NCBI GenBank assembly: GCA_040285825.1
Contig: JAUPSS010000004.1
Location: 372,001-436,000 of the forward strand
DNA: 64,000 nt
Reading direction: 5' to 3'
Source: Eukaryota sp. TZLM1-RC
Lineage: Eukaryota > Protista > Metamonada: BaSk clade
The position numbers were made by a program, and so were the translations under genes. Each line of letters begins with the position of its first letter. Position 1 is the stretch's first letter. Below are positions 1 through 32,700 of this stretch, in pieces. The notes beneath the pieces are model-generated. The model made no database searches and was not told where the DNA came from. It worked only from the letters and a program-made list of their open reading frames with translations.

Positions 1-525
1 TGATATCACCATCTGGTGTTAAACACGGTCATCCATTAGGTCTTTTCTTCTTCCATCTTGCAGATCAACTTCTAATGTGTGAATTAAAACAGCAATACCC
101 TGAAATTGAAATTCTGACTTATATGGATGACATTTCAATAATTTGTCCTCATTGATTTATTGGGATAAAATTCTAAAACTCAACAGAGTTGTAATCCAAT
201 TGATCTTTCTTTAAACATTTTTCAATGTTTATTGATTGGTAGAGAGCCTGTTGAGCTTGTTATTGATTACCTAAGTGTTCATTTCATCAATTATTTTGAA
301 CCAGGATGACGATTTTTAGGTTGTCATTTAGGTTTTGATGATCCCGCAATCAACTTTCATCTCTTGCAGCAAGTTTTGAGTGTGAATTTATCGCACTTCC
401 AGATTCAGATCTTGAAAAACATATCAAATTTTTCATTCTCAAGTTGTTTAATTTCCGAAATTCCAAATATATAGTGTTTATTGTTAAATGACCACCAATA
501 AACAACTACCCTAAAATTGAGGTGT
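1..525 (+). pseudogene. Degenerate non-LTR retrotransposon RT fragment (CRE-like)
   Basis: Translates to SGVKHGHPLG...ILTYMDDI (decayed QGDPL and YMDD motifs), followed by stops and frameshifts. 1-352 recurs at 13748-14099 and, inverted, at about 32500-32845. Confidence 0.75.
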
Positions 526-1065
526 TTTTGGGCTTTATTATTGTCACTTAATTTTGATTAATACCTTCGAAAATCAATAGTATTGATTTTTGGTCCTTCA
601 GAAGAGTAATCCAGAAACTGGTTTTCAAGAAGGACAGTATTCAGAAAAAAAGAAATGAAAAAGCCAGGCTGTATATATTTATGAAGGGGAGCAGGAGTGA
701 AACTGGAGTTTCAATACTTCAATTGATAAAATCATTCTTGCTGAATTGTTTAAATTCTAGAATTTTTCTAATCATTGATGAAACATTTAAACAAACAAAA
801 TAATACAAAAAATGTTAATTAAAATCACAAGAGGCCTCCTGGTGGTTTTCAGCAAGTTTAAAAGTTCAAAAAGGAAAACAATCAGGTTGAACTTTGATAA
901 CTTAGTAATGGTTACACGAAATTATTACATGATCAGAAAATAAATAAATTATTTATAAAGCTGTTCAAATTCCAATAAAAATTTACCATGAGAAAACTGT
1001 TCAATGAAAAACAAACTTTTTCGTTAACCTTAAAACCTAAAATTAAAAATAAACAGTTGTTAAAT

Positions 1066-3033
1066 TAAAACTTACATGTTGTGTGATCAACACCTCATCA
1101 AAAATCCAATAATAAACCAATGATTTTTGTAAGTTTTTAAAAGCTAATGGAAAATAATTCCATTCATTCTAAATCTGTCATTCAAGGTGATTTAAAGCCT
1201 GAAAACACCTGGTTTGTAAATGCACAAAATTGGCTTTATTGGCATTTACCCCCAAATATGCTGCATTGGATGTAGCAAGGTTAATGAATGTATGTAAAAT
1301 GATCCCTCAATAGACCAAATATTGACAAAATAATTCAGTAAATCAAATTCATTGAGTGGTGGTAATGAAGAAATACAATTACCAAACAAAATTAATTTAA
1401 ATTAAAATTGAATCCTACAAATAAATAAATACTTCTTAAAAAAATCTCTAAAGTAGATAAATAGTAGTCATTGATAAATGCTTTGATAACAAGTGGTCTA
1501 GGGCTTTGTCTGCTTTAAGTTTGGAGTGAAATCTCCCAACAATCAAGATACTATGGATAAACTAAAAATACTTCATCCATTGGAAGACCCCAAAAATGGA
1601 TCAAAATTTTTACGGAAATTATACGGAAACTCATCCGTTGATGGCATCAGAAGTATTTTCAGTGATAAAAAAGAGACCACGCGGTAAGTCTGCCGGACTT
1701 TCTCGTATCTCTATTGATCATGTAAAAGCGGCAATTATTTCATCAGAGGATTGTCTTGGTTTATTAACCAAATTTTTCAACAAAATATTGACTGGTCAAC
1801 TCAGATACCCAGAAGAATTAAGAAGTTCTCGTTTGACTGCACTTGTCAAAAATTCAAAAATGGATTTTCGTCCTATTGCAGTCTCTGAGAGCTTACAAAA
1901 TATTTTTTCTGCGTGTTGCTTGAGCAGGTTCAATGAGAAAGCAAAAAAGAGTTTATTACCCTTTCAGTATGAAATTAATACCACTGATGGAGTCTCTTCA
2001 GCGATATTTGCTACAAATGTATTATTTCGCCAAAATGAATCCAATGTTTGTATGTCATTGGATTTTAGTAATGCATGCAATTCACTCAGTCGTTGCAGTA
2101 TCCATGGTGCTTTATTGCAAAATATGCCGGAATTGATGCCGTATTTTCAATCAACATATAGCACATATTCTAATTTACATTTTGGTAATTCCATTTTGAG
2201 TTCATCAAGTGGTGTAAAGCAAGGAGATCCGTTAGGACCTCTTTTGTTTTGTTTATCCATTCATCCTATTTTATTACAAATTCAAATATGATAGATATGG
2301 ATGATGTTGTTCTTATAGGTGACTTAACCATTGTTAGAGAAGCAACTATGTGTTTTAAAGAATTACTAGAATTGGTGCATGAGAAGTCAATTGGATCAAT
2401 GAAGTCCCAGTAGTTCTGAGTTAATGATATTTGAGTTGAGTAAAGAACACAACAAGATAATAATAGTGAGGAATTTAGATTTGAAAAAGATCAAACAAGC
2501 ACCAAACCAAGTCAAATTCGGTGAAGTAAAAGGACTGGCAATTGGATCTTCAAGGTAGTTCAAAAGATTGTGAAATTACTTTGAATACTTGGTCTTACTT
2601 GAAGTAGCAAAAAGAATTTAAGAACAGATCTTAATTGGTAATATAAACAAAATAAAAAGAGTATTAAGTTCGAAACATTTAAAATCAGTAAATCTGGATA
2701 CATCCGATCGATCGGCTATATGGACAATCAAGGTGTCAATCAGCGCGGCCAAAGTGCAGGTATTAAAGCGATTCACTGATGACGTGGTGTGGCGTGGCAT
2801 TTGGTCATTGCAAGAACAAACACCGTATCAAACGGGAACTGAGTGCGATGAAGAGAGAGAGAGAGGTTGAGCGAGCATAGTCTTCTGAGACAACTATAAG
2901 AGAAAACGATGGTGGCTTCACAAAGTCATCATTTCAACAAATTTTAGCAGAAATCATGAGGGCACATGTGCAGTATCAAAGGGCCATTCATAGGCTAGTG
3001 ACAAGGTGTTGATCACACAACATGTAAGTTTTA
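1066..3033. mobile_element. ~1.97 kb segment bounded by perfect 30-bp inverted repeats (possible non-autonomous TIR element)
   Basis: TAAAACTTACATGTTGTGTGATCAACACCT at 1066-1095 and its exact reverse complement at 3004-3033. The same pair occurs at 29834-29863 and 31760-31789. Confidence 0.5.
1470..2370 (+). pseudogene. Non-LTR retrotransposon (family B, CRE-like) RT fragment
   Basis: ORF 1596..2291 has KSAGLS, FRPIAVSE, SLDFSNA and GVKQGDPLGPLLF. YMDDVVL follows a stop/deletion. Confidence 0.9.
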
Positions 3034-3091
3034 CAGTATAAGAATTGCAAATTTGACTTAGTATTAATGACCATTTATACAACATACCTTG

Positions 3092-3445
3092 ATGTACCTT
3101 GTTTTACATTGTTGTTACTTTGATGTTTTTGAGTTTGTTCATTTTTGTGGTTTAGATTCTTACACTTTAGATGTGGCATGTGGTGTCTTAAATTGTTATT
3201 TTGAAATTGTTGAGTTTGATTATTATGTTTATAGTTTATTTTTTCAATCAAGAAGCTGCCAACATCTTCTATCAACAAACCCATTTACTGTTGATTTAAC
3301 AATGGATGGAGATGTTGAAGCAAATCCTGGTCCCAGAAAGAGAAGATCTAGTTTTGAATCAACTCCTCCATCAAAAATTATAAGAAATGCAATTTTTGAC
3401 CAACAAACATCAAAGCGTAAGCTAAAAAACAACAAAAAGCACTGA
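3092..3445 (+). CDS. Short ORF with 2A-like ribosomal skipping motif and NLS-like basic stretches (possible Fanzor N-terminus)
   Basis: LTMDGDVEANPGP (D-V-E-x-N-P-G-P at 3311-3334) followed by RKRR and KRKLKNNKK. Confidence 0.6.
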   Translation: MYLVLHCCYFDVFEFVHFCGLDSYTLDVACGVLNCYFEIVEFDYYVYSLFFQSRSCQHLLSTNPFTVDLTMDGDVEANPGPRKRRSSFESTPPSKIIRNAIFDQQTSKRKLKNNKKH

Positions 3446-3469
3446 ACCGAGAAATTTGTATTGAGAATA

Positions 3470-3917
3470 CAATCCAAAAGAAACTTTAATTCTACTGGGT
3501 GATTATAGTAAAAAAGGTTCCAAGAATTTGAAACATCATAGACCTACTCCAGGCATTGGATGGATCCAATTTCTGAAAATAAATGGTTTTGAAGTATTGA
3601 TGATTAATGAAGCTTTTACTTCAGCAAAATGTCCTGGTTGTTTTGAAAAGGTTGCTACGTTTTTGAGAGTAACAAACCCCAGAGTGTATAGAAGAGAAAA
3701 GACTCCTGTTACTACATGTCATGATTTATTAGCTTGTAACAGTGAGAGTTGCAAACTCAGTAACAAAGGCTCAACAAAGCTTTTCAATAGAAATATGCTG
3801 GCTTGTCTGAATATATTTGCAATTGCTGAAGTCAGAATGAGTGGTAATGAAAGGCCTCAGTATCTGTGTAATAGATAGTTTTTGTAATTATTCCACACGA
3901 AAATTGATCGTGTATTT
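3470..3917 (+). pseudogene. Fanzor1 (TnpB-like) C-terminal fragment plus conserved 3' tail
   Basis: LGDY..PTPGIG..INEAFTSAKCPGC..H.LLAC...C..FNRNMLACLN..G.ERPQYL is the typical Fanzor1 RuvC-II/zinc finger/RuvC-III ending. The 39-nt tail after the stop is shared with the copy at 26370-26409. Confidence 0.85.
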
Positions 3918-5930
3918 ATGGGAATTTCCCACACTTCTTGCTTCACTTTGATGTCTGATATCATTAAACAAGAAATCAACTCTATCTCTGCTAGCCATCA
4001 TACCCTCATTCTCACCAATTCAGGTTACTGTTATGGTTGTGGAAGTAACACATACAACAACGTCTTCTTCAGTGATCTCAGTGATTACCTCCTTCCGATC
4101 AAACTGCCAGTCACTAACATAAGGTCAATTGCAGCTGGATTTGGACATTCTCTAGCATTGACAGTAGATGGGGAAGTCTATGCATGGGGTTCAAATATAG
4201 TTCATGAGATTAATTCTTCAAACAATCAAATTCTGCCAATCATCAACGTGCAATTGCCTTATTTAATTACCCAAGTGTTTGCAAGTAACTGGAGCTCCTT
4301 TGCACTTACTATTGGTGGTTACGTCCTGCATTGGGGTAACGGTGTAGAAAGGTCCATCATTAAAGGATTAAGTAATGTTGTTTTCCTAGATTGCTTTAAA
4401 GGGAATTTTGTTTGTGGAACTTCTACAAATGAATTATTTTTGTATTATGAAAATCAAGCAATTGATACATTTGTTTTGGAAAATGTGGGAAATTTTGAAG
4501 GAAAATCATGTTGTGGGTTTACTGAACTGGCTGAATCAAATATTTTCCACATTGCTATTATCAATCTTGAAAATATTGTTTTTGAAGTAACGTTTAATTT
4601 TCAAAGCAAAACTTGGTCTAATCCTGTGTTTATTCTAGGTTTAAATAATGTAAAATCAATTAAATCTGGTGAAGGATTTTTTGTTGCCCTCACAACAGAT
4701 GGAAGTGTTTTTTATTGGGGTAACACATCTAGATTATTTCAAAATGACGATGATGTTTATTCTTTTTCAGTTAAACCAATAACATCCCTAGAAAATATAG
4801 AAGGTATTTCTGTTGGTCCAACTCATTTATTTGCTTTCAATGGTAATTGTGTTTATGCAGTGGGTCAGAATTATTTCGGACAATTAGGAACTGGTGATTA
4901 CAAGAATGAAGTAAATCCACTAGTGGTTCTCGGGTCAGAAACATGTGGAATCTTTGAGAAATCAACAGAATTTACCATGAATTTGTTTCCACATTTGATC
5001 AAAACTGTCCTTCTAAAAATACTTGATTATTACAACAATAATTACAGCAATGCGAAATTTGTGAAGACGATGTTCCTATCAAAATACGCTCTCAGTAAAC
5101 AGTTTTTCTGCTTTTGTTCTCAGTTACTATCAACTTATTCTTTTAGGAATCATTTTCTAAACATTTGTGATTTAGGTGATATTAAGAATTCAAAAGTTAC
5201 AATATCTTTGTGTACACAATATTTTAAATTAAATCAAGTCAATAATGTTATTACTGATTTACACTTGATAACTGACACAGTTGAACATCTCAAATTAATT
5301 CAAACTAAATGTCCCAATTTATTATCATTTTCCATCTCCAAAGGGGATTCACCTATTGATCACATGACTGATTTTGATTTTTTGAATAAAACAAAGCTCA
5401 GATATATTCAAATCAATTATCCAATACTTGATTTTCCAAAGCTACCAAGTTCTCTGACAAAGTTGGTTGTTAGTGATGAATCTTATTTGTTCAACCGTGG
5501 ACGTATTGACCTATCTTATTTATATAGACTCAAGGATGTTACTGTTAGTGGATTTCATCTATCCAATGCACTGGCTTCTGGTCTATTTTTACTTCCTCCT
5601 ATTGTTTCAAGATTAACAATCGAAGGATACAGTTTACGTTTTGGTGAATTTATTAAATTTCCAATGTTGAAAGAGTTGGTGTTGATTGTGTCGTTTTATC
5701 AAGTTCACAATGTGAAAGAGTCTTGTTTTCCATCTTTAAGTTTTTTACAGTTCAAAAAAATTGGATCTGGTTTTAATGACAATCCTCAGTTTTGCCCAAT
5801 TAGGCTCAATAAGGAGGGTAGGATCAAGTCGGTTGTTAAAATGAAACATGGATTCCTCACAGCATTACTGGCCTTTCCTTATTGGATTCAATATTGTTAT
5901 CAAAAAGAGGTTGAAGAGTTGTTTATTTAG
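3918..5930 (+). CDS. RCC1/BLIP-II repeat protein with C-terminal LRR-like region (start may be ATG at 3951)
   Basis: Intact 670-aa ORF. RCC1 motifs IAAGFGHSLALTVDGEVYAWGSN and GQNYFGQLGTGD; LPSSLTKL-type repeats in the C-terminal part. Confidence 0.9.
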   Translation: MGISHTSCFTLMSDIIKQEINSISASHHTLILTNSGYCYGCGSNTYNNVFFSDLSDYLLPIKLPVTNIRSIAAGFGHSLALTVDGEVYAWGSNIVHEINSSNNQILPIINVQLPYLITQVFASNWSSFALTIGGYVLHWGNGVERSIIKGLSNVVFLDCFKGNFVCGTSTNELFLYYENQAIDTFVLENVGNFEGKSCCGFTELAESNIFHIAIINLENIVFEVTFNFQSKTWSNPVFILGLNNVKSIKSGEGFFVALTTDGSVFYWGNTSRLFQNDDDVYSFSVKPITSLENIEGISVGPTHLFAFNGNCVYAVGQNYFGQLGTGDYKNEVNPLVVLGSETCGIFEKSTEFTMNLFPHLIKTVLLKILDYYNNNYSNAKFVKTMFLSKYALSKQFFCFCSQLLSTYSFRNHFLNICDLGDIKNSKVTISLCTQYFKLNQVNNVITDLHLITDTVEHLKLIQTKCPNLLSFSISKGDSPIDHMTDFDFLNKTKLRYIQINYPILDFPKLPSSLTKLVVSDESYLFNRGRIDLSYLYRLKDVTVSGFHLSNALASGLFLLPPIVSRLTIEGYSLRFGEFIKFPMLKELVLIVSFYQVHNVKESCFPSLSFLQFKKIGSGFNDNPQFCPIRLNKEGRIKSVVKMKHGFLTALLAFPYWIQYCYQKEVEELFI

Positions 5931-6608
5931 TCAAAGTATGACCTCGGATATCTCCAATTCGAAAACAGTTTAAATAGTTGTTTACTTTTAATTGTTGATG
6001 AAAATGACTTGTGGCTATGGACCACAGCCTGTTTATTGTTGATTTAAACAGTTTTTTTATAACATTGTTAGAAAAATAATCATTAAATTTTTCCAATACA
6101 TCTTACTCGAAATTTTCACAAGATATGTATTGATTGTTGTTTTTGTTGAATCTTAATGACAAACTGTTTGAATGGTAAAAAGGCAATTGCTGTGACTTGA
6201 AACATACTCGCGAATTATAGCAATTTCAATTTTGATTTTTAAATCATTTTTAACAGTTTTTTGTATAAATTGTTATTTAAAACAAAACCCTAATATCAAT
6301 TGTTTATTCAATTACTCAAAATTAAGCAAAAATAACGAACTATTTACCCCGATTAGGTCAGTGACGATGAATCTTTCAGAAATAGAAAATCTTTCAGTAT
6401 CAACTATGGAGTTCTCATTATCATCACCTGAAAATTTTTATGTTTTCGGTTACTTCTTCGTATTGGTGCAGTTGTCATCCAGATTACCACTGATAGTGAC
6501 TCCAGAAAGATGTTGTCATGAGTTGAGGCGAATTTTAAGGCTGTTGTTCCATAACATCATCTTTCATAATCAATGATTGTGAAGCTATAACTTTATTGTG
6601 TGTGTTTT

Positions 6609-6763
6609 AACATCAAGAACTGCATAAATGTGGTTACTCAAGCAGTATCCAAAAATCACACAACAAATGATTTGGTTTATAACTACAGTTTAAAATGATG
6701 ATTTTTGATCTTTCAAAATGTATTTTGCTGGACATTTCAACATCAAAAACTGCATAAATGTGG
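6609..6763. repeat. 25-bp direct repeat pair (1 mismatch)
   Basis: AACATCAAGAACTGCATAAATGTGG at 6609-6633 and AACATCAAAAACTGCATAAATGTGG at 6739-6763. Confidence 0.85.
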
Positions 6764-6767
6764 CCAA

Positions 6768-8637
6768 TTCTGCCCAACGCTGCTAAATCAATCATTTTGC
6801 CAATCAAATTACCCCAAACTAATACCACCCAAATTTCTGGTCATTCCCGACACTTTTCTTATTCCTTTATTTTAACATTAAGAGGATATTTATTTGGTTG
6901 GGTTTGGTATTCAAATAACCAAATTTCTTTAATTGATATTCCTTATTACATAGAAAGGGTATTTCCCTTTGGTTTTGAATACATTTTTGCTTTACTAAAA
7001 ATGGTTTGGTTATTGGTTTGAAATTTAATCCCGTTTTCGAAGTAATTAAGTTTGATTTAATTAATATTGTTTATTTAAATGTGTTGGTAGATGGTGATTC
7101 TTTTATTGGTATTGATTCCAAAAATGATTTTTTCTATTTTGATCATGTGGAAAATACCTTGACCAAATTTCCGATCAATAATTTCTTAACTCCAAAAGTA
7201 TCCTATGATCATTCAATCATTTTTGATGGTGATTTACTTGTTCTTGATGTTGATGGAAATGTTTGGAAGTTCGCGGAGGAGTATGATGATCATTATCTTG
7301 GTAATCCTTTTACTAAACCCATCAAAGTTGAAGGTTTGGGCAATATTGTTTCTGTTGCTGGTTATAGTGGCATTTATGCTGCTGTTGATGACAATGGTAA
7401 AGTTTTTGTGTAGGGCTTATTGTTTAGATTAAGTGATGTTTATGAAGAATATTGTTATTATCAACCAATCTCCATCGAAGCTTTCACTAATATAGAAAGT
7501 GTTTCAGTAGGTCGTGAATTCTTGTTTGCCTACAACAAAAACACTGTTTGGGCTTGGGGAAGGAACGATAAAGGTCAATTAGGTACAGGTGATTTGATTG
7601 ATCGACTGCAACCTGTCAAAGTATTTGGATCTGAAATATTTGGATCCATCATTTATCCCAAACCCAATTTTGGTAGAATTTATTTGGATTTAATTAAACT
7701 TATTTATAACGAATATTTAAATCTTTTATTCATGTCAGTTGGTAATCAGCTCTATGTTAGAGCTAAATTTTGCCCAAAATGTTCAATTAGCAAGAGAGTG
7801 GCTCTCCTTGCCAAGGAAGTATTTGGAGGTCACCCAATAAATAATATGGTCTATTTAAAAGATCCTCACAATTTGTTTTTAAACAGCAATGTTTCTGTTC
7901 TGCAACTCCAATTGTTCAATGATTTCAAAGGCCCTAGAATAATGAATAATAAAATTCAACAATTGGAGATTTACTACGATATGGTTGATTATGATCCAGA
8001 ATTAGTAACGCTTTTCCCAAATGTGGAGGTAGTTAAGCTTTTTCACAGGTTGAAATCTAATTTGAGGTTAAACTTGGCTTATTTATCACGTTTGAAAAGT
8101 TTAGAGCTTCATTGTTTCATTATTGTAGAACAATTACCTACTTCACTAGTGAAGTTAGTGCTTGGAAATAATGTCAGGCAAATTGGTGATTTGAGCCACC
8201 TGAAATCATTAAAACAATTGTTGGTGCTTTATTTTGAACTCTCTCACAGAATGGTAAGAGGAGAAATACCTTTACCTCAATCAATTGTTAGAATGGAAGT
8301 GCGATTGATTGATCCTATTATTGTTAAACTGCATTTATCAAACTTGAAAGAATTACTAATTCATTATGGTGCTCCAGTTAATATCACAAAACATAACTTT
8401 CCTTCTTTAAGATTTGTTCAATTCATAAGACCGTCATTGGAAAAATTGTCGGATTCTACTCTATCTTCAACAAATCTTATCAATCAAGGTTTAATTAAAT
8501 CTGTTCAACTAATTAATTATGAATATTTAGTGGAATTGTCCTGCTTTCCGAGGTGGATTCACTATCCATCCATTCGTTGTATAGTGGACTTGTACAATCA
8601 TTATTCAAAGACAAATGAAGAAGATGTGAATCAATAG
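6768..8637 (+). pseudogene. 5'-truncated, frameshifted copy of the RCC1/LRR-like gene at 17823-20042
   Basis: ORFs 6758..7021, 7006..7413 and 7420..8637 align in pieces to the 741-aa ORF. There is a frameshift near 6995 and TAG replaces TGG at 7411. The inverted match continues to ~9117 vs ~17333. Confidence 0.9.
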
Positions 8638-9134
8638 AAATAGAGTCATTTTAATGACTACCATTAACAGGAATTGGTTTTTCAACAAGTGTCTTAGTAT
8701 ACAATTTTTAGAGATAATACACTACAATTTATCATTATTCTATTTGTTTAATAGTAGCTTTGCTTAACTCAATTTGTTCAACCATTACATTTGTAGAAGC
8801 TAGACAATCATTAATTGAAGTTTGGTGAAACGAATACTGAATTGAAAATGGAGCAACAGAAACTGCTTTTTCTTTTGACTTTGTTGTGCTAAAATTGTAA
8901 AACTATTTGAGTTTTTTATATAACTTTTTTGGATGTTTAGAACATTTTTCGTTTCTTCAATTCAAAGTTAATTGGCAAAATTCACCCAACATTCCTAGAG
9001 TCGTTAAGCTTTGGAAATTTTCAAATAAACGGTGTAGAGGAAATCATGGATCACTGAATTTCGTCCCATTAGTTCTTAGTTTATTTTATTAAGTGTTGTA
9101 ATTCTATAAAATATTATCTCGATGATCGGTTATT

Positions 9135-12100
9135 TCGCCAATTTCACTAGTGCTTGCTTCAAATGTTTTATTTCATCAAAATGAATCCAATGTTTGTATG
9201 TTGTTGGATTTCAGTAATGCATTCAATTCAATTCATTGGTGCAGTATCCATGGTGCTCTATTGCAATATATGCCGGAATAAATGCCGTATTTTCAATCAA
9301 CATATAGCAAAAATTCTAATTTTCATTTTGGTAATTCCATTTTGGCTTCATCAAGTGGTGTAAAGCAAGGAGATCCGTTAGGACCTCTTTTGTTTTGTTT
9401 GGCCATTCATCCTATTTTATTGCAAATTCAAGAGATGTTTCCTTAGCTAAAATTGATTGCCTATATGGATGATGTGGTTTTAATAGGCGACTGAACGATT
9501 GTCGGAGAAGCAATTGTATGTTTCAAAGAATTATTCAACAAAATTGGTCTTCGACTGAACTTACTTAAATGTGTTTTGCTTTCAACTTCTCCAGTTTCTA
9601 CAATAGTTTATGAAATTAACATCCAATCCAGGTTATTTTCAATTGATGCTATTCGTGATGTAGGTTCGTTTTTAGGCAATACTGATGAAATCTCCAAACA
9701 ATGAATTGAAAAATTGAATATTGTTTCTAAAAAATTGATCGAATGATGAAATTGGATGCGCAGAAACATATCAAATTTACCATTTCAAGATTCTGTTTCA
9801 ATTCAAATTTCAATCATATATTTCGATCTTTTAATCATTTCATCTCTACACCCGTGGCCCAAAAGTTTAATGAATTATGTGCAAAAATTTTGTCACAATT
9901 ACTGGGATGTAAAATGTTCCAAATTCCTGATCATGCTTTTCTTAGTCCACATTATGGCGGTTTAGGGTGGACGAAGGCTTCTATTCTTACTTCATGTGCT
10001 TTAAGCAGTGGATGCAGAAATGCAATCTTTGAGTTTTCTGAAAGATGTGCCGATTGGGAAGATTTTATTTATGAAGATTTTAGTTATGAATTTGTGAATC
10101 GTTTTCCTGAAAAAATTCATCTCATTGAAAATTGTGGCAGCTCTTATCTTATTTCTATGCAACAAGAATGGAAACTCTTTCACCCAATATTTGGTCTAAA
10201 TGTTTCCCCTCTGATATTGTGGAACTTCCTCCAAGAAGCTTGCTCTCCTTACCACTGATTTTTGCAAAATTGCAGAAAAAAATCTTAAAAGTTTTAGAAA
10301 ACTTGGATTGTATTGTACGTCTTAGCTTGGCTAAAGAAAAAAATCCCGTTTTTGCAAACTTTTTGATTGATCTTGAAGACAGTTGCTCAAGTTGCCTAAT
10401 CTCCCAAATTCCCAACATTTATGGCCTTCTACTTAATGATCACCAATGGACCACTGCAATGAGAATGAGATGTTTTCTATGGCCTTGTTCATTACCAAAT
10501 GATTTTATTTGTCGCTGCAAAAGTGTTGTTACGCTTTTCCATATTTTAAACTGTAAGTATTTTATAACTTATCGCTCAATTGTTCATGACTCAGTTCGTG
10601 ATCAATTATATGCCATGTGCAAAAGTTTCAATATAGAGGCATTTATTGAGCCACTAGTACGTAAGCTGTCTTCAGATCAAACTGATGATTCCTTTGGTAA
10701 AAGAAGGGCAGATTTAGTAGCTCCAGGGATCGATGGTGTTCTCAATGTTGTAGATGTTGTCTCAGTTGATGTTTGCAGAAATTATGCTGCTCGTTTAGTG
10801 TATTCCGCTGATTCGCCGTTATCTAACGCCGAAAAAAAGAAGATAAAAAAGTATGAAGAACCTTTGGCACAGTTAAGTAGAGTGGAACATGTGAAATATC
10901 AGTTTGTGCCGTTTGCAATTTCTCTTTTTGGCAATATTGGACCTTCAGGGTTGCACTTTTTTGAAAATTTCAAAAAAGTGTTACTGAATAGGTCTGGTAA
11001 AACAATGAACTCCACTTTCTGGTTAAATAGAATTGTTTTTTGCATTTTCAAGTCTATTCCTACAATGATTTCAAAGGCACTTTTAGCTATTGGTGTAGAA
11101 TATGAACGTAATGCTGTGAGTAGGTTTAGTAATAGTGAAGCTTGTTTGGAGGATATTGAATTCTAGATGGTTATTTTTGTCTCAATAAATATTCCAGTTT
11201 TTTAAAAAAAATTGGGAAGATTTATTAAGTTCTACTATTTTTGCATTAAATGAAGAAATTTCAAAAATTGATGTGGAAATATGGGGTCGATGCTTTCCCC
11301 AATCATTCAATGGAAACACTCCTGAAGACAATTGTATAAATTTAAAATACATTCTTCGAACATTACAGAAACAATTGACTGGAATGTATGAAAATGACCT
11401 TTATAATAATATATGCAGCTCGGCTGTTTTAAATCATGATCTTCACTCATTGTTATTGGAAAAGGGTGTTTGTGAAAATCAGTCATCAGATTCTTCACTT
11501 TTTGTAACCATTGTACCACGAAGATTTGGATTGTGTGCCACTAATGAAGCATTTGTAACAAAAATGAGATTATATTTGAACATCCCCATTAACCAATTAT
11601 TATCAAAAGAAAAATGTATTTGTTCGAATTCACCTCAACTCACTTTGCGCCATGCTCTAAATTGCTCTAAATTGATAACTTATCGTTCTTCATTACATGA
11701 TGCTGTTAGAGACACTGTTTTCAATATGGCACAAACTGCAAGGATATCGTTTATCAAAGAGCCCCTGCTGAAGGAAACACTTTCTCTGAATAATTTAGGT
11801 TCTGATGATAGAGGTGATGTATACTGTGATTGGATTGATAATTCTGAAGCTATTGTTGACTTTGTCTCATGTAATGTTGCAAATGATACTTTGGTTCACA
11901 GAAGAAAACTTAATCCTGTGGCTGCTCTGGATTTTAAAGCAAAAGAGAAACATAGAAAATATGATAAAGATATTGAAGAGGCAAATCTCGATAGAAATAC
12001 ACAGCTGGTTTTTATTGCTTTCCCATTTTCGATAAATGGAAGATTATCAGATGAAGCAGAAACTTTTTTGGATGACTTCCAAAAAATGGTGCAAGAAAAA

Positions 12101-13699: not shown

Positions 13700-14100
13700 T
13701 TTACAATTTTTATGGACAATGAACACCTGTCTATGAAATCTTCAATTTGATATCACCATCTGGTGTTAAACACGGTCATCCATTAGGTCTTTTCTTCTTC
13801 CATCTTGCAGATCAACTTCTAATGTGTGAATTAAAACAGCAATACCCTGAAATTGAAATTCTGACTTATATGGATGACATTTCAATAATTTGTCCTCATT
13901 GATTTATTGGGATAAAATTCTAAAACTCAACAGAGTTGTAATCCAATTGATCTTTCTTTAAACATTTTTCAATGTTTATTGATTGGTAGAGAGCCTGTTG
14001 AGCTTGTTATTGATTACCTAAGTGTTCATTTCATCAATTATTTTGAACCAGGATGACGATTTTTAGGTTGTCATTTAGGTTTTGATGATCCCGCAATCAA
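13700..14100 (+). repeat. Duplicated non-LTR RT fragment
   Basis: 13748-14099 reads identical to 1-352. The inverted homolog is at ~32500-32890. Confidence 0.9.
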
Positions 14101-14201
14101 CAAAATACAACACATGATTAAACACAACTTATACATTTATTAAACTGCACTCGAAGCCATCCCAAAAGCCTTCAAATGAATAAATACTGCAAATCCACAT
14201 C

Positions 14202-26369: not shown

Positions 26370-27900
26370 AAGTATATGATCAATTTGGTGTATGGAATAA
26401 TTACAAAAACTATCTACTACACAGATACTGAGGCCTTTCACTACCACTCGTTCTGACTTCAGCAATTGCAAACATATTCAGACAAGCCAGCTTATTTCTA
26501 TTGAAAAGCTTTGTTGAGCCTTTGTTACTGAGTTTGCAATTCTCACTATTACAAGCTAATAAACCATGAAATGTAGTAACAGGATTCATTTCTCTTCTAT
26601 AGAATTCGGTATTTGTTACTCTCAAAAACGTAGCAAGCTTTTCAAAACAACCAGGACATTTTGCTGAAGTGAAAGCTTCATTAATCATCAATACTTCAAA
26701 TCCATTTCTTTTCAGAAATTGAATCCATCCAATGCCTGGGGTAGGTCTATGATGTTTCAAATTGTTGGAACCCTTTTTACCATAATCACCCAGTAGAATT
26801 AAAGTTTCTTTTGGATTGCCAAACTTCTGAACAAGGTTTTTTAACAAGCAACTTTAAGTCTTTTGCTTGTAAATAAAAGCTTACATTTTATAAATGCACC
26901 ACAACTCAAGACTGTAAAAGTCAATTGTCAAATCAATTTGCCGAAGTTTGACACCCACAAAGTTGGAAAAATCTATAAAAGTTGCTGAATTGGCAGCAAA
27001 CGCGGACAATACGTTGTTTGCATCTTCAATTGTCATTTCGTTAGACTCTATCATTTGGTTCCTGTCGTAATATACCTCAGTATACTTTATCGCCCATCGT
27101 TTTTGTTTATCACTCATCCTACTTTTCAAAGACCAGGACATCTGAGTCGTTCTCAACCATCTGTACTTCTTGTCTTGATTCATCACCAGACTATTTCTTT
27201 GCTGTTCAGTTTCATGTTCAGGCAACATGGCTAATTCTTGATCAGTCTTTTTACTCCCAAAATACAATAAATAACGTCTTCCAGGATTCCTTTGTCATGA
27301 AATGCAGCAACATCAACATCATGAATTTATAATTCTGAAATACCGGCCATGTTGTCTGGCTTACAGTTCTGTCTTTGTAAATCCTGACGAACAAATTCTA
27401 CTGCAATATTAAATCCATCTGTTTGGATAATGTTGTTAAATTTATAGCTCTTCTGTTTGAACATTTGTTGGTTTAAATCCAGATTACTAGAACAAAGGTC
27501 AAATTACTCAGGTGGTTTGAATTCTATAATGTGGGCTATTGTATTGGACATTTTCAGCGTCGGTGTAGATGATAAATCATCCATTTATGTTTGTCTAACA
27601 ATTATCCATATTGTTCTTGTGTCAATAAGAAAATGTCCAGGGCCTCAAGTGGTTGAAACAGGAGAAATATGATATTGATGCATAAAGATTATTGTAGTAA
27701 AGAGATAGGCATATGTTGATGGAAAAACAGTGTTGTTAGATTTTTTTTAATTGACTGTTGGGTGAAAGTTTCAGGTTAAAGCAATAATGTTGCCTAAAGG
27801 CTATTGTAGTAAAGGAATGTCTGATTTACTTTTTATTCATCTGATATAAGCATTAGGGCGCCAACACTGCTTCTTCCCTTTTTCTAAATCAATCAGCTTA
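26370..27900 (-). pseudogene. Fanzor1 pseudogene, 5'-truncated
   Basis: In order across frameshifts: PGHFLIDT, FNNIIQTDGFNIAVEF, (D)PGRRYLLY (RuvC-I region damaged by an indel), LGDYG..PTPGIG, INEAFTSAKCPGC, HGLLAC, FNRNKLACLN, ERPQYL. Confidence 0.88.
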
Positions 27901-27956
27901 TATGAATATTAAACATAGCTATTTCAAATAACTAAATAATCTATACAAACACAGAA

Positions 27957-28283
27957 TTAGCTACGTTTCCTAATTCTATTACTACTTTTTAGCCTCTGAG
28001 AAAACGTAGACTCATGGGAGGCAGCTTTACGTTGGCTAGTGGTACACTTTCCAATTCTCTTGTTATCCCTACTAAATAACTGATAAGCTTCGGAATTTTT
28101 TACCGAATGGAGAGGCTCTTCTGTTGTCTCACCGTCAAACCATTGAACAGTACAGAAACTACCTGAATCAGAACTATATTCTGAAAGGATTTTCTCTTTA
28201 ACGTGTATTTCAATAATTTTTTTTTGGCAAAAACCAGAATATCTAGAAAAAGGCCATGTTCCCAGATGACAACTTCTCTCCAT
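27957..28283 (-). pseudogene. Chromodomain-like fragment (integrase C-terminus of a chromovirus-like element)
   Basis: EKILSEY...FCTVQWFDGETTEEPLHSVKNSEAYQLF resembles the chromodomain at 42764..42946. Confidence 0.6.
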
Positions 28284-28689
28284 CTCGGTGAAAGTTGATT
28301 GAGTACATCAATTGCTGTATCATCTGGAACAACGGGATATGGTAATTTATATCAATTTAATCTATTCTTTAAAACCTGTAACTCAAACTGCATTAAATTG
28401 TGATTAAGACAACAATGAGGTTGATAATTACAAATAAGGTTTAAAAACCTACGAAGCAAGGTTTTTTCATCAGAGAATATTTCTGCCTGAATTTCCATAG
28501 CAATGTCTGGTATTTTGCTGACTTGAGAACTTATTCTCAACATAAGTGAATATTTACTGTCCAAAAAGAAATTCGGGCGGTCAAACTTATTTACTTTTTT
28601 GTGAAAAAAAAACTTTTTGACGGGTTGTCCGTTGTTACATCTTTTTTTGAACAGTTACGCCTCAAAGTCAGAAGGAGCTGCCACAGTGA

Positions 28690-29779: not shown

Positions 29780-32700
29780 GTATGTTGTATAAATGGTCAT
29801 TGATACTAAGTCAAATTTGCAATTCTTGTACTCTAAAACTTACATGTTGTGTGATCAACACCTAGTCACTAGCCTATGAATGACCCTTTGATTCTGCACC
29901 TGCGCCCTAATCATTTCCGCTAGAACTTGTTGAAAAGATGACTTTGTGAAGCCACCATCGTTTTCTCTTATAGTTGTCTCAGAAGACAATGCTCGCTCAA
30001 CCTCTCTCCCTTTATCGCACTCAGTTCCCGTTTGATACCGTGTTTGTTCTTGCAATGACCAAATGCCACGCCACACCACGTCCTCAGTGAATCGCTTTAA
30101 TACCTGCACTTTGGCCGCGCTGATTGACACCTTGATTGTCCATATGACCGATCGATCGGGTGTTCCAGATTTACTGCTTTTAAATGTTTCGAACTTAATA
30201 CTCTTTTTATTTTGTTTTCTATTACCAATTAAGATCTGTTCTTATATTTTTTTGCTACTTCTAGTAAGACCAAGTATTCAAAGTAATTTCACAATCTTTT
30301 AAACTACCTTGAAGATCCAATTGCCAGTCCTTTTACTTCACCGAATTTGACTTGGTTTGGTGCTTGTTTGATCTTTTTCAAATCTAAATTTCTCACTATT
30401 ATTTTCTTGTTACGTTCTTTACTCAACTCAAATAACATTAACTCAGAACTACTGGGACTTCATTGATCCAATTGACTTCTCATGCACCAATTCTAGTAAT
30501 TCTTTAAAACATACAGTTACTTCTCTAACAATGGTTAAGTCACCTATAAGAACAACATCATCCATATAATCAATCATATTTGAATTTGCAATAAAATAGG
30601 ATGAATGGTCAAACAAAACAAAAGAGGTCCTAACGGATCTCCTTGCTTTACACCACCTGATGAACTCAAAATGTTATTACCAAAATGTAAATTAGAACAT
30701 GTGCTGTATGTTGATTGAAAATACGGCATTAATTCCGGCATATATTGCAATAGAGCACCATGGATACTGCGACAACTGAGTGAATTGAATGCATTATTAA
30801 AATCCAATGACATACAAACATTGGATTCATTTTGGCGAAATAAAACATCAGTAGCAAATATCGCTGAAAAGACTCCATCAGTGGTATTAATTCCATATTG
30901 AAAGGGTAATAAAATCTTTTTTAAACCTGCTTAAGCAACAAGCAGAAAAAATATTCTGTAAGCTCTCAGAGACTGCAATAGGTCGAACATCCATTTTTGA
31001 ATTTTTGACAAGTACCGTCAAACGAGAACTTCGTAATTCTTCTGGGTATTTGAGTTGACCGGTCACTATTTTGTTGAAAAATTTGGTTTATAAAACAAGA
31101 CAATCCTCTGAAGAAATAATTGCCGCTTTTACATGATCAATAGAGATACCAGAAAGTCCGGCAGACTTACCGCGTGGTCTCTTTTTTGTCACTGAAAATA
31201 CTTCTGATGCCATCAATGTATGAGTTTCCGTATAATTTCCGTAAATATTTTGATCCATAATAGGGTCTTCATAAGGATGAAGTATATTTAGTTTATCTAT
31301 TGTATTTTCATTGTTGGGAGATTTCACTCCGGAACTTAAAGCTGACAAAGCCTTGGACCATTTGTTGTCAAAGCATTCATCAATGACTACTATTTATCTA
31401 CTTTAGAGATTTTTTTAAAGAAGTATTTATTTACTTGAAGGATTCAATTTTAATTTTAATTAATGTTGTTTGGTAATTGTATTTCTTCATTACCACCACT
31501 TAATGAATTTAATTTACTGAATTATTTGGTCAATATTTGGTCTATTGGGGGACCATTTTACATACATTCATTAACCTTGCTACATCCAATGCAGCATATT
31601 TGGGGGTAAATGCCAATAAAGCCAAATTTGTGCATTTACAAACCAGGTGTTTTCAGGCTTTAAATCACCATGAATGACAGATTTAGAATGAATGGAATTA
31701 TTTTCCATTAGCTTTTAAAAACTTACAATAATCATTGGTTTATTATTGGATTTTTGATGAGGTGTTGATCACACAACATGTAAGTTTTAATTTAACAACT
31801 GTTTATTTTTAATTTTAGGTTTTAAGGTTATCGAAAAAGTTTGTTTTTCATTGAACTGTTTTGTCATGGTAAATTTATATTGGAATTTGAACAGCTTTAT
31901 AAATAATTTATTTTTTTCTGATCATGTAATAATTTCGTGTAACCCTTACTAAGTTACCAAAGTTCAACCTGTTTGTTTTCTTTTTTGAACTACTAACCTT
32001 GCTGAAAAACACTAGGAGGCCTCTTGTGTTTTTAATTAACATTATTTGTAGTATCTTGTTTGTTTAAATGTTTCATCAATGATTAGAAAAATTCTAGAAT
32101 TTAAACAATTCAGCAAGAATGATTTTATCAATTGAAGTATTGAAACTCCAGTTTCACTCCTGCTCCCCTTCATAAATATATACAGCCTGGCTTTTTCATT
32201 TCTATTTTTCTGAATACTGTCCTTCTTGAAAACCAGTTTCTGGATTACTCTTCTGAAGGACCAAAAATCAATACTATTGATTTTCGAAGGTATTAATCAA
32301 AATTAAGTAACAATAATAAAGCCCAAAAACACCTCATTCTTAGGGTAGTTGTCCATTGATGGTCATTTAACAATAAACACTAAACATTGGTAATTTGGGA
32401 AATTAAACAACTTGAGAGTGAAAAATTTGATATTTTTCAAGATCTAAATCTGGAAGTGCAATAGATCAACATTCAAAATTTGCTAAAAGAGAAGAAAATT
32501 GATTGCGGATTTCATCAAAACCAAAATGACAACCTAAAAATCGTCAGCCTAGTTCAAAATAATTGATGAAATGAACACTTTGATCAACATTAACAAGATC
32601 AACAGGCTCTCTACCAATCAATAAACATTGAAAAATGTTCAAAGAAAGATCAATTTGATGACATCTCTGTTGAGTTTTAGAATTTTATCCCAATGAATCA

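Follow-up and report, generated by a model that had tools for sequence, protein, structure and literature searches.

Within a 64,000-nucleotide stretch of the genome of Eukaryota sp. TZLM1-RC (the window, meaning this whole stretch), a short open reading frame that encodes a 2A peptide is followed closely by the C-terminal end of a Fanzor1 protein. The question raised by this locus is whether the two pieces lie together by chance or are the remains of a single gene in which a 2A peptide precedes an RNA-guided nuclease. 2A/StopGo peptides occur in RNA viruses, in non-LTR retrotransposons and in a few cellular gene families, and Fanzors are stand-alone RNA-guided nucleases. The initial annotation proposed that the element has suffered an internal deletion and that its intact form encodes a leader, a 2A peptide, and then a proline, a nuclear localization signal (NLS) and Fanzor. 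The features of the locus, and of a second copy in the window, are the following.

1-3092, plus strand: upstream block outside the Fanzor gene, with a decayed non-LTR reverse transcriptase (RT) fragment (RVT_1, 1596-2291).
3093-3277, plus strand: leader remnant, truncated on its 5' side at 3092/3093, with the final one to two units of a Cys/Phe-rich tandem repeat.
3278-3334, plus strand: 2A/StopGo peptide NPFTVDLTMDGDVEANPGP, with the class A core GDVEANPGP at 3308-3334.
3332-3445, plus strand: opening of the post-2A product, with Pro ahead of two basic clusters (RKRR and KRKLK) and the frame closed by a stop at 3443-3445.
3446-3470, plus strand: family sequence that is out of frame here, reads ..NREICIEN in intact copies and ends at the deletion point.
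3470-3473: deletion junction, with about 2.73 kb lost relative to locus L005 (9140-11868) and 2.75 kb relative to locus L006.
3471-3878, plus strand: the last 135 codons of Fanzor1 and the stop (3876-3878), with MINEAFTS, CPGC and NRN.
3879-3939, plus strand: right end of the element, kept in six other loci to 3931-3939 and including an ATG at 3918.
26370-28618, minus strand: copy 2, decayed, with an exonuclease remnant at 28618-28226 and Fanzor from 27674 to a stop near 26410.

The reading frame occupies 3089-3445 on the plus strand, with a TTG at 3089, an ATG at 3092 and the stop at 3443-3445, and encodes 118 amino acids. Its product consists of a Cys/Phe-rich stretch, NPFTVDLTMDGDVEANPGP (3278-3334), PRKRR (3332-3346) and KRKLK (3413-3427). 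A perfect D(V/I)ExNPGP motif followed by basic residues had been reported for the frame from 3092, and both are present as described; DVEANPGP at 3311-3334 is the sole NPGP found in a six-frame scan of the window. Class A 2A peptides carry the motif (G/H)D(V/I)ExNPGP, in which x is the most permissive position in deep mutational scans (bioRxiv 10.64898/2026.09.24.754024), and GDVEANPGP at 3308-3334 conforms to it. Given the amino-acid composition, a protein of this size would be expected to contain the strict motif G-D-[VI]-E-x-N-P-G-P about 1e-7 times. The break is predicted to fall between Gly (3329-3331) and Pro (3332-3334), and the basic clusters RKRR and KRKLK are putatively NLS-like. Past the 2A peptide the frame closes after 37 codons. 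Alignment reveals that one base is absent after 3423 relative to all related copies, and the early stop, which follows KNNKKH, is due to this loss; the extra base is present in contigs of related copies from public DNA runs. At the other end of the frame, the match of the leader to full-length copies begins at 3099.

The Fanzor1 C-terminus was said to begin about 25 nt past the stop, and this placement is correct. The peptide NPKETLILLGDY begins at 3471, 25 nt past the stop of the 2A frame, and is read in the frame of 3090. This frame is off by one base from that of the 2A peptide, so that no single product joins both here. Residues 8-132 of the 137-aa translation of 3465-3875 correspond to the final ~125 residues of the Parasitella Fanzor1. 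A PDB search with the fragment matched PpFz1 (9cf0, E 4.5e-17) and the Spizellomyces Fanzor1 (8gkh, E 6.9e-9), and it is on this significant match to solved proteins over the RuvC and zinc-finger region that the fragment is assigned to Fanzor1. The RuvC-II region contains MINEAFTS (3600-3623), the zinc finger contains CPGC (3630-3641), and RuvC-III reads NRN instead of NRD (3786-3794). The conserved Fanzor motif is D ... [TS][TS]-x-x-C4 zinc finger ... RD (Bao & Jurka 2013); the RuvC-III Asp of RD is absent from the window fragment, which comprises the last 135 codons only. A splice joining the 2A frame to the Fanzor fragment was considered and rejected, as the gap consists of family sequence and the deletion junction, contains no GT..AG, and separates two different frames.

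At the right end of the element, the ATG at 3918 lies inside the conserved segment and opens a downstream RCC1-like reading frame. The next called host gene begins one base past the end of homology in L005 (12338/12339), and where homology ends in L007 (12004). The right ends of these Fanzor elements (window 3879-3939, L005 and L007) adjoin host gene starts.

Other copies of the leader and 2A peptide are present in TZLM1-RC. A word search with the 118-aa product recovered one 192-aa protein of the same organism. A profile built from these two leader-2A sequences and run against a representative library of 1.84 billion proteins gave 16 matches, comprising 13 TZLM1-RC hypothetical proteins, one avihepatovirus polyprotein and two weak matches. 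All 13 TZLM1-RC proteins carry the same leader, and the avihepatovirus polyprotein aligns through its 2A peptides only. Six TZLM1-RC loci (L001, L002 and L005-L008) were reached via the leader proteins. In all six, the leader-2A segment, basic stretch, exonuclease, linker, and the N-terminal, middle and C-terminal parts of Fanzor are colinear on one strand, and in L005 a single frame change interrupts about 4.3 kb. The six loci match window 3099-3473 at 86-94% identity and window 3470-3939 at 87-95%, and hold 2.2-2.75 kb extra between the two matching blocks (e.g. L005 9140-11868). The internal deletion that had been postulated is thus borne out by sequence on both of its sides (86-95% identity in six loci). 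The annotation had also allowed that other copies of the 2A segment might continue into a non-LTR RT or another gene; none of the six does so, and all six continue into exonuclease and Fanzor. No fully intact gene was found in TZLM1-RC itself.

In L002, one uninterrupted reading frame (6001-9219) encodes a 1072-aa protein (KAL0207688.1, here P0021). In order, it contains four to five leader repeats, DGDVEANPGP, PRKRR, a second basic cluster, an exonuclease domain (PF03104, E 1.4e-7, 31.7 bits), a long linker and the N-terminal part of Fanzor, which was identified through its 72% identity with copy 2. The Fanzor C-terminus of this locus is in a different frame, after a deletion of about 476 bp. 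A PDB search with P0021 gave no match, because its reading frame ends before the RuvC part.

Locus L001 was considered as a second copy of the window deletion. This was rejected, since past ..ICIENT the normal gene continues there, interrupted by MULE and Gypsy insertions. The MULE and Gypsy elements occupy L001 10900-18300 and are nested inside the Fanzor element. In addition, the TZLM1-RC protein P0025 (948 aa) is a gene model that fuses a non-LTR RT with the exonuclease region. Either other elements often insert into Fanzor copies, or the reverse holds.

Comparison with the full-length copies indicates what the window copy has lost. The deletion at 3470-3473 removed the exonuclease, the linker, and the N-terminal and RuvC-I parts of Fanzor. 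Short similar words, AGAAT..CAAT, are found on both sides of the deleted stretch in the full-length copy, which suggests a deletion of the microhomology type. Among public sequencing runs, three DNA runs and no RNA runs contain the stretch, the DNA runs in small shares. None of the short contigs of related copies from DNA runs bridges the junction at 3470, and one contig departs from the window at 3471 into the full-length continuation. The leader is cut at its 5' end, one base is lost, about 2.7 kb is deleted, and the join is out of frame; the window copy therefore makes no nuclease. Restoring the lost base would not bring the two sides of the deletion into one frame, so that no functional product is encoded by this copy. 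Judged from its sequence, the segment 3093-3939 is the dead and non-autonomous relic of a member of a Fanzor1 element family of Skoliomonas, the flagellate to which strain TZLM1-RC belongs.

The surroundings of the relic are duplicated within the window. The upstream block (1-3092) matches 32845-29775 on the minus strand at 93%, and, as part of the same inverted duplicate, 3470-3917 matches 26818-26370 at 92.7%. The decayed non-LTR RT fragment is bracketed by perfect inverted repeats of 30 bp (1066-1095 and 3004-3033), and in the second upstream block it is bracketed by an equivalent perfect 30-bp pair (29834-29863 and 31760-31789). The upstream block ends at the same base in both copies (3092 and 29775), next to different Fanzor sequence. 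The duplicated blocks are separated by the 377-bp 2A segment in copy 1 and, in copy 2, by 2956 bp of stop-rich sequence that contains no NPGP. The exonuclease remnant of copy 2 matches PF03104 (E 1.1e-7; the piece 28355-28654 scores 32 bits) and belongs to a different subfamily, with 74% amino-acid identity to P0023 and 56% to P0021. No leader or 2A peptide was detected with blastn or tblastn in the 1156 bp upstream of it (29774-28619). That segment, read on the minus strand, matches nothing among the fetched sequences except for a 92-bp piece similar to 33262-33172. Elsewhere in the window, 1-354 and 13748-14101 are 100% identical over 354 bp and diverge beyond; the cause is either duplication in the very recent past or a fault of assembly.

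Open versions of the gene are present in the sister strain TZLM3-RCL. Searching with the portion of P0021 that follows the 2A peptide recovered P0026, a protein of 1194 aa encoded without stops at L003 4001-7585 and belonging to a 14-member 90% cluster. P0026 begins with an unrelated leader of 66 aa, followed by LLLDGDVEANPGP and a Pro/Arg-rich basic stretch. Its exonuclease domain is recognised by PF03104 (E 1.3e-13, 51.3 bits) and also by solved family-B polymerases, and its Fanzor1 is complete (residues 732-1191, SpuFz1 8gkh, E 1.4e-21). Members of the P0026 cluster that are 1308 aa long have yet another leader and an unchanged core. A second TZLM3-RCL protein, P0028, is 1491 aa long, is encoded without stops at L004 3001-7476 and has the same module order, with a Fanzor match to SpuFz1 (8gkh) at E 3.1e-8. 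These proteins are divergent. P0026 and P0021 are 31% identical, and BLAST aligns 13% of the length of P0028 to P0026 at 25% identity. A 2A peptide in frame with coding sequence on both sides is thus found in L002, L003 and L004, and not in the window copy. The intact form first proposed for the element stands as to the order of leader, 2A peptide, basic stretch and Fanzor, which holds in all six TZLM1-RC loci and in the open P0026 and P0028; it falls short in that an exonuclease and a linker, which it lacked, precede Fanzor.

The exonuclease is of the PolB 3'-5' type, is about 300 aa long, and lies between the basic stretch and Fanzor, to which a long linker leads. P0026, P0021 and the copy 2 piece 28355-28654 all score above the PF03104 cut-off of 23 bits; the domain is lost from copy 1 of the window. 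In an alignment of P0026, P0021, P0023 and P0028, the ExoI D-x-E, the ExoII N-x3-F-D and the acidic residue of ExoIII are invariant, and the ExoIII Tyr is present in P0023 and P0028 only. The RuvC-III motif is NRN in the window copy, in copy 2 (near 26500), in L002 and in the P0026 family, and NRD is kept in P0028. As NRN is common to the window family and to the intact, multi-copy P0026 family, it is a trait of the lineage and not the decay of a single copy. With NRN at RuvC-III, the Fanzor part of these lineages may not cut DNA by the usual route.

The core of the 2A peptide is far more constant than its surroundings. DGDVEANPGP is identical in P0021, P0026 and P0028. Across its ten codons, the window copy and L002 differ from L003 at five positions and L004 differs at more, and all of these differences are synonymous. 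The residues just upstream of the core are unrelated among the three lineages. Leaders consist of tandem repeats of 96 bp in L002 and 66 bp in L004, both multiples of three. The repeat regions lie at L002 6283-6689 (96 bp), at L004 3008-3256 (66 bp) and at the N-terminus of P0029 (~29 aa), and the repeats of three lineages share no sequence likeness. They may be a DNA-level feature of the left part of the element that is translated through. Synonymous-only change in the core, repeat periods in multiples of three and invariant DEDD residues together show continuous reading of one frame, from the leader across the 2A peptide and into the enzyme. Purifying selection evidently holds the 2A core. 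The leaders are unrelated between lineages, built of repeats and only sometimes hydrophobic; a disposable leader is therefore likelier than one that serves as a second functional product.

These observations bear on several explanations of the locus. One is that the 2A peptide comes from some other gene, or from a non-LTR retrotransposon, whose 5' end happens to lie beside a Fanzor fragment. The window itself gives grounds for this, with a decayed non-LTR RT directly upstream of the 2A frame and with the RT block and Fanzor adjacent in copy 2 without any 2A peptide. Some non-LTR ORFs are known to begin with such peptides (work cited in PMC12338488), and in one environmental contig an APE endonuclease follows the same core immediately. 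The RT block (1-3092), however, is absent from all six other TZLM1-RC loci (L001, L002 and L005-L008), in each of which the leader-2A segment runs into exonuclease and Fanzor on the same strand, and single reading frames span both parts in L002, L003 and L004. A chance or non-LTR origin of the 2A peptide is refuted for the window family by the six colinear loci and the spanning frames, and we give it almost no probability as an account of the locus. The relic in the window is one more independent junction that ties the leader-2A segment and Fanzor to one element.

Two further explanations accept the gene and differ in how it is expressed. The leader and the 2A peptide could be untranslated, with the true start at a Met past the 2A peptide and the long reading frames produced by gene calling through a repetitive 5' region. 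Methionine codons do follow the 2A peptide in P0026, which makes internal initiation conceivable, and the leaders, made of repeats, are unrelated from one family to the next. Yet the ten core codons change only synonymously across three lineages, the repeat periods are multiples of three, and in L002, L003 and L004 the open frame begins in the leader and runs on past it, all of which make an untranslated leader very unlikely. Alternatively, the motif could be translated and conserved and still skip poorly in Skoliomonas, so that the leader stays on or the motif acts as a translational brake that limits the nuclease. In published screens many motif-bearing peptides have low activity, and the residues upstream of the motif matter; no StopGo test in any metamonad was found in the literature accessible without subscription. 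Against poor skipping, the core is canonical class A, its DLT-x-DGDVE context equals that of picorna-like virus polyproteins (P0016; L022 and L028), and selection keeps the core while leaders swap freely, as would fit a leader that is discarded. Poor skipping is unlikely, though it merits consideration. The preferred explanation, which we regard as probable, is that the locus is the relic of a 2A-led exonuclease-Fanzor1 gene whose leader would be shed by StopGo and whose fusion protein would be made.

Under this explanation, a ribosome that has translated the leader would skip the Gly-Pro bond at the 2A peptide and so release the leader. It would then carry on into an exonuclease-Fanzor protein that begins with Pro and the basic stretch. 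The NLS-like basic stretch would carry this protein to the nucleus, and the 2A peptide would insulate the nuclease from variable or repetitive sequence translated upstream. We infer StopGo in Skoliomonas, the NLS function and the purpose of the leader from sequence; the insulating role is modelled on the logic proposed for the 2A peptides that start trypanosome and animal non-LTR elements. More tentatively, and with less than even confidence, the open, multi-copy genes of TZLM3-RCL may represent a live Fanzor lineage in which the 2A peptide sheds a freely evolving leader built of repeats and delivers the fusion protein with Pro and the NLS at its N-terminus, so that any upstream in-frame start would be usable, including read-in from host sequence, and in which the exonuclease processes DNA ends found by the RNA-guided module and may replace RuvC cutting in the NRN lineages.

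The arrangement resembles several known systems in part. Class A 2A peptides at the N-terminus of non-LTR ORFs occur in L1Tc/ingi of trypanosomes and in animal APE-type elements (Heras 2006 and Odon 2013, as cited in PMC12338488). In both cases a class A 2A peptide lies near the start of the main ORF, where it would free the enzyme from upstream translation; in Skoliomonas, by contrast, the cargo is a TnpB-type nuclease with an exonuclease and not an RT or endonuclease, and the host is a metamonad. Of three large 2A surveys, none refers to a Fanzor, TnpB or nuclease context, and the one that covers eukaryotic contexts names LINE ORF1p and ORF2p, RapGEF, death-domain and ankyrin proteins. Among viruses, the avihepatovirus polyprotein QUS52569.1 (DLTIDGDVESNPGP) has nearly the same peptide, DLT-[MI]-DGDVE-[AS]-NPGP, and the exact DGDVEANPGP occurs in environmental RdRP-bearing polyproteins of picorna-like viruses. 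The viral peptides lie between the capsid and replication proteins of RNA genomes, whereas the Skoliomonas peptide lies in a chromosomal DNA element. The latter was either acquired from a virus or is convergent.

Scans of metagenome and viral contigs for DNA encoding the exact core gave 22 loci, in none of which was there likeness to the exonuclease or Fanzor beyond the 2A peptide, and no relatives of P0026 were found in metagenome contigs. In the environmental locus L019 (365-5098), the exact DGDVEANPGP stands directly before an APE-type endonuclease domain. In the environmental loci L014 (4005-8384) and L017, the exact core follows a RING finger in reading frames of about 1500 aa. The environmental loci L022 and L028 encode picorna-like polyproteins with the exact core.

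Described Fanzor1 proteins (SpuFz1 8gkh, PpFz1 9cf0 and GtFz1 9cer) align with the Skoliomonas proteins over the C-terminal RuvC and zinc-finger region. Unlike them, those described in the literature searched have neither a 2A leader nor a PolB exonuclease, and the founding Fanzor paper (Bao & Jurka 2013) mentions no exonuclease or fusion. The closest design is the engineered TREX2-SpCas9 (PMC13370227), which likewise places a 3'-5' exonuclease and an RNA-guided nuclease in one polypeptide. Engineered fusions are man-made and use TREX2 or T5, whereas the Skoliomonas fusion is natural and its DEDD domain is of the family-B-polymerase type. In literature accessible without subscription, no paper on a Fanzor with a natural 2A peptide was found, and Fanzor together with an exonuclease was found in engineered fusions only. 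Within that literature, the claim that the architecture lacked a prior description holds. 2A peptides and Fanzor1 are each known; what appears to be new is the combination of a 2A peptide in the ORF of a mobile element with Fanzor1 and an exonuclease.

The sequences of two Skoliomonas strains, the only ones in which the architecture has so far been seen, point with good confidence to a family gene that consists of a variable repeat leader, a class A 2A peptide, Pro and a basic stretch, a DEDD exonuclease, a linker and Fanzor1. Such a gene would be a case of a DNA element that employs a natural 2A peptide for the expression of an RNA-guided nuclease, with the nuclease fused to a proofreading-type exonuclease. 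Fusion of exonuclease and nuclease is a design at which genome engineers arrived independently. The intact P0026 and P0028 provide test objects for StopGo in metamonads, for the benefit that a 2A leader may bring to such an element, and for the role of an exonuclease in RNA-guided targeting.
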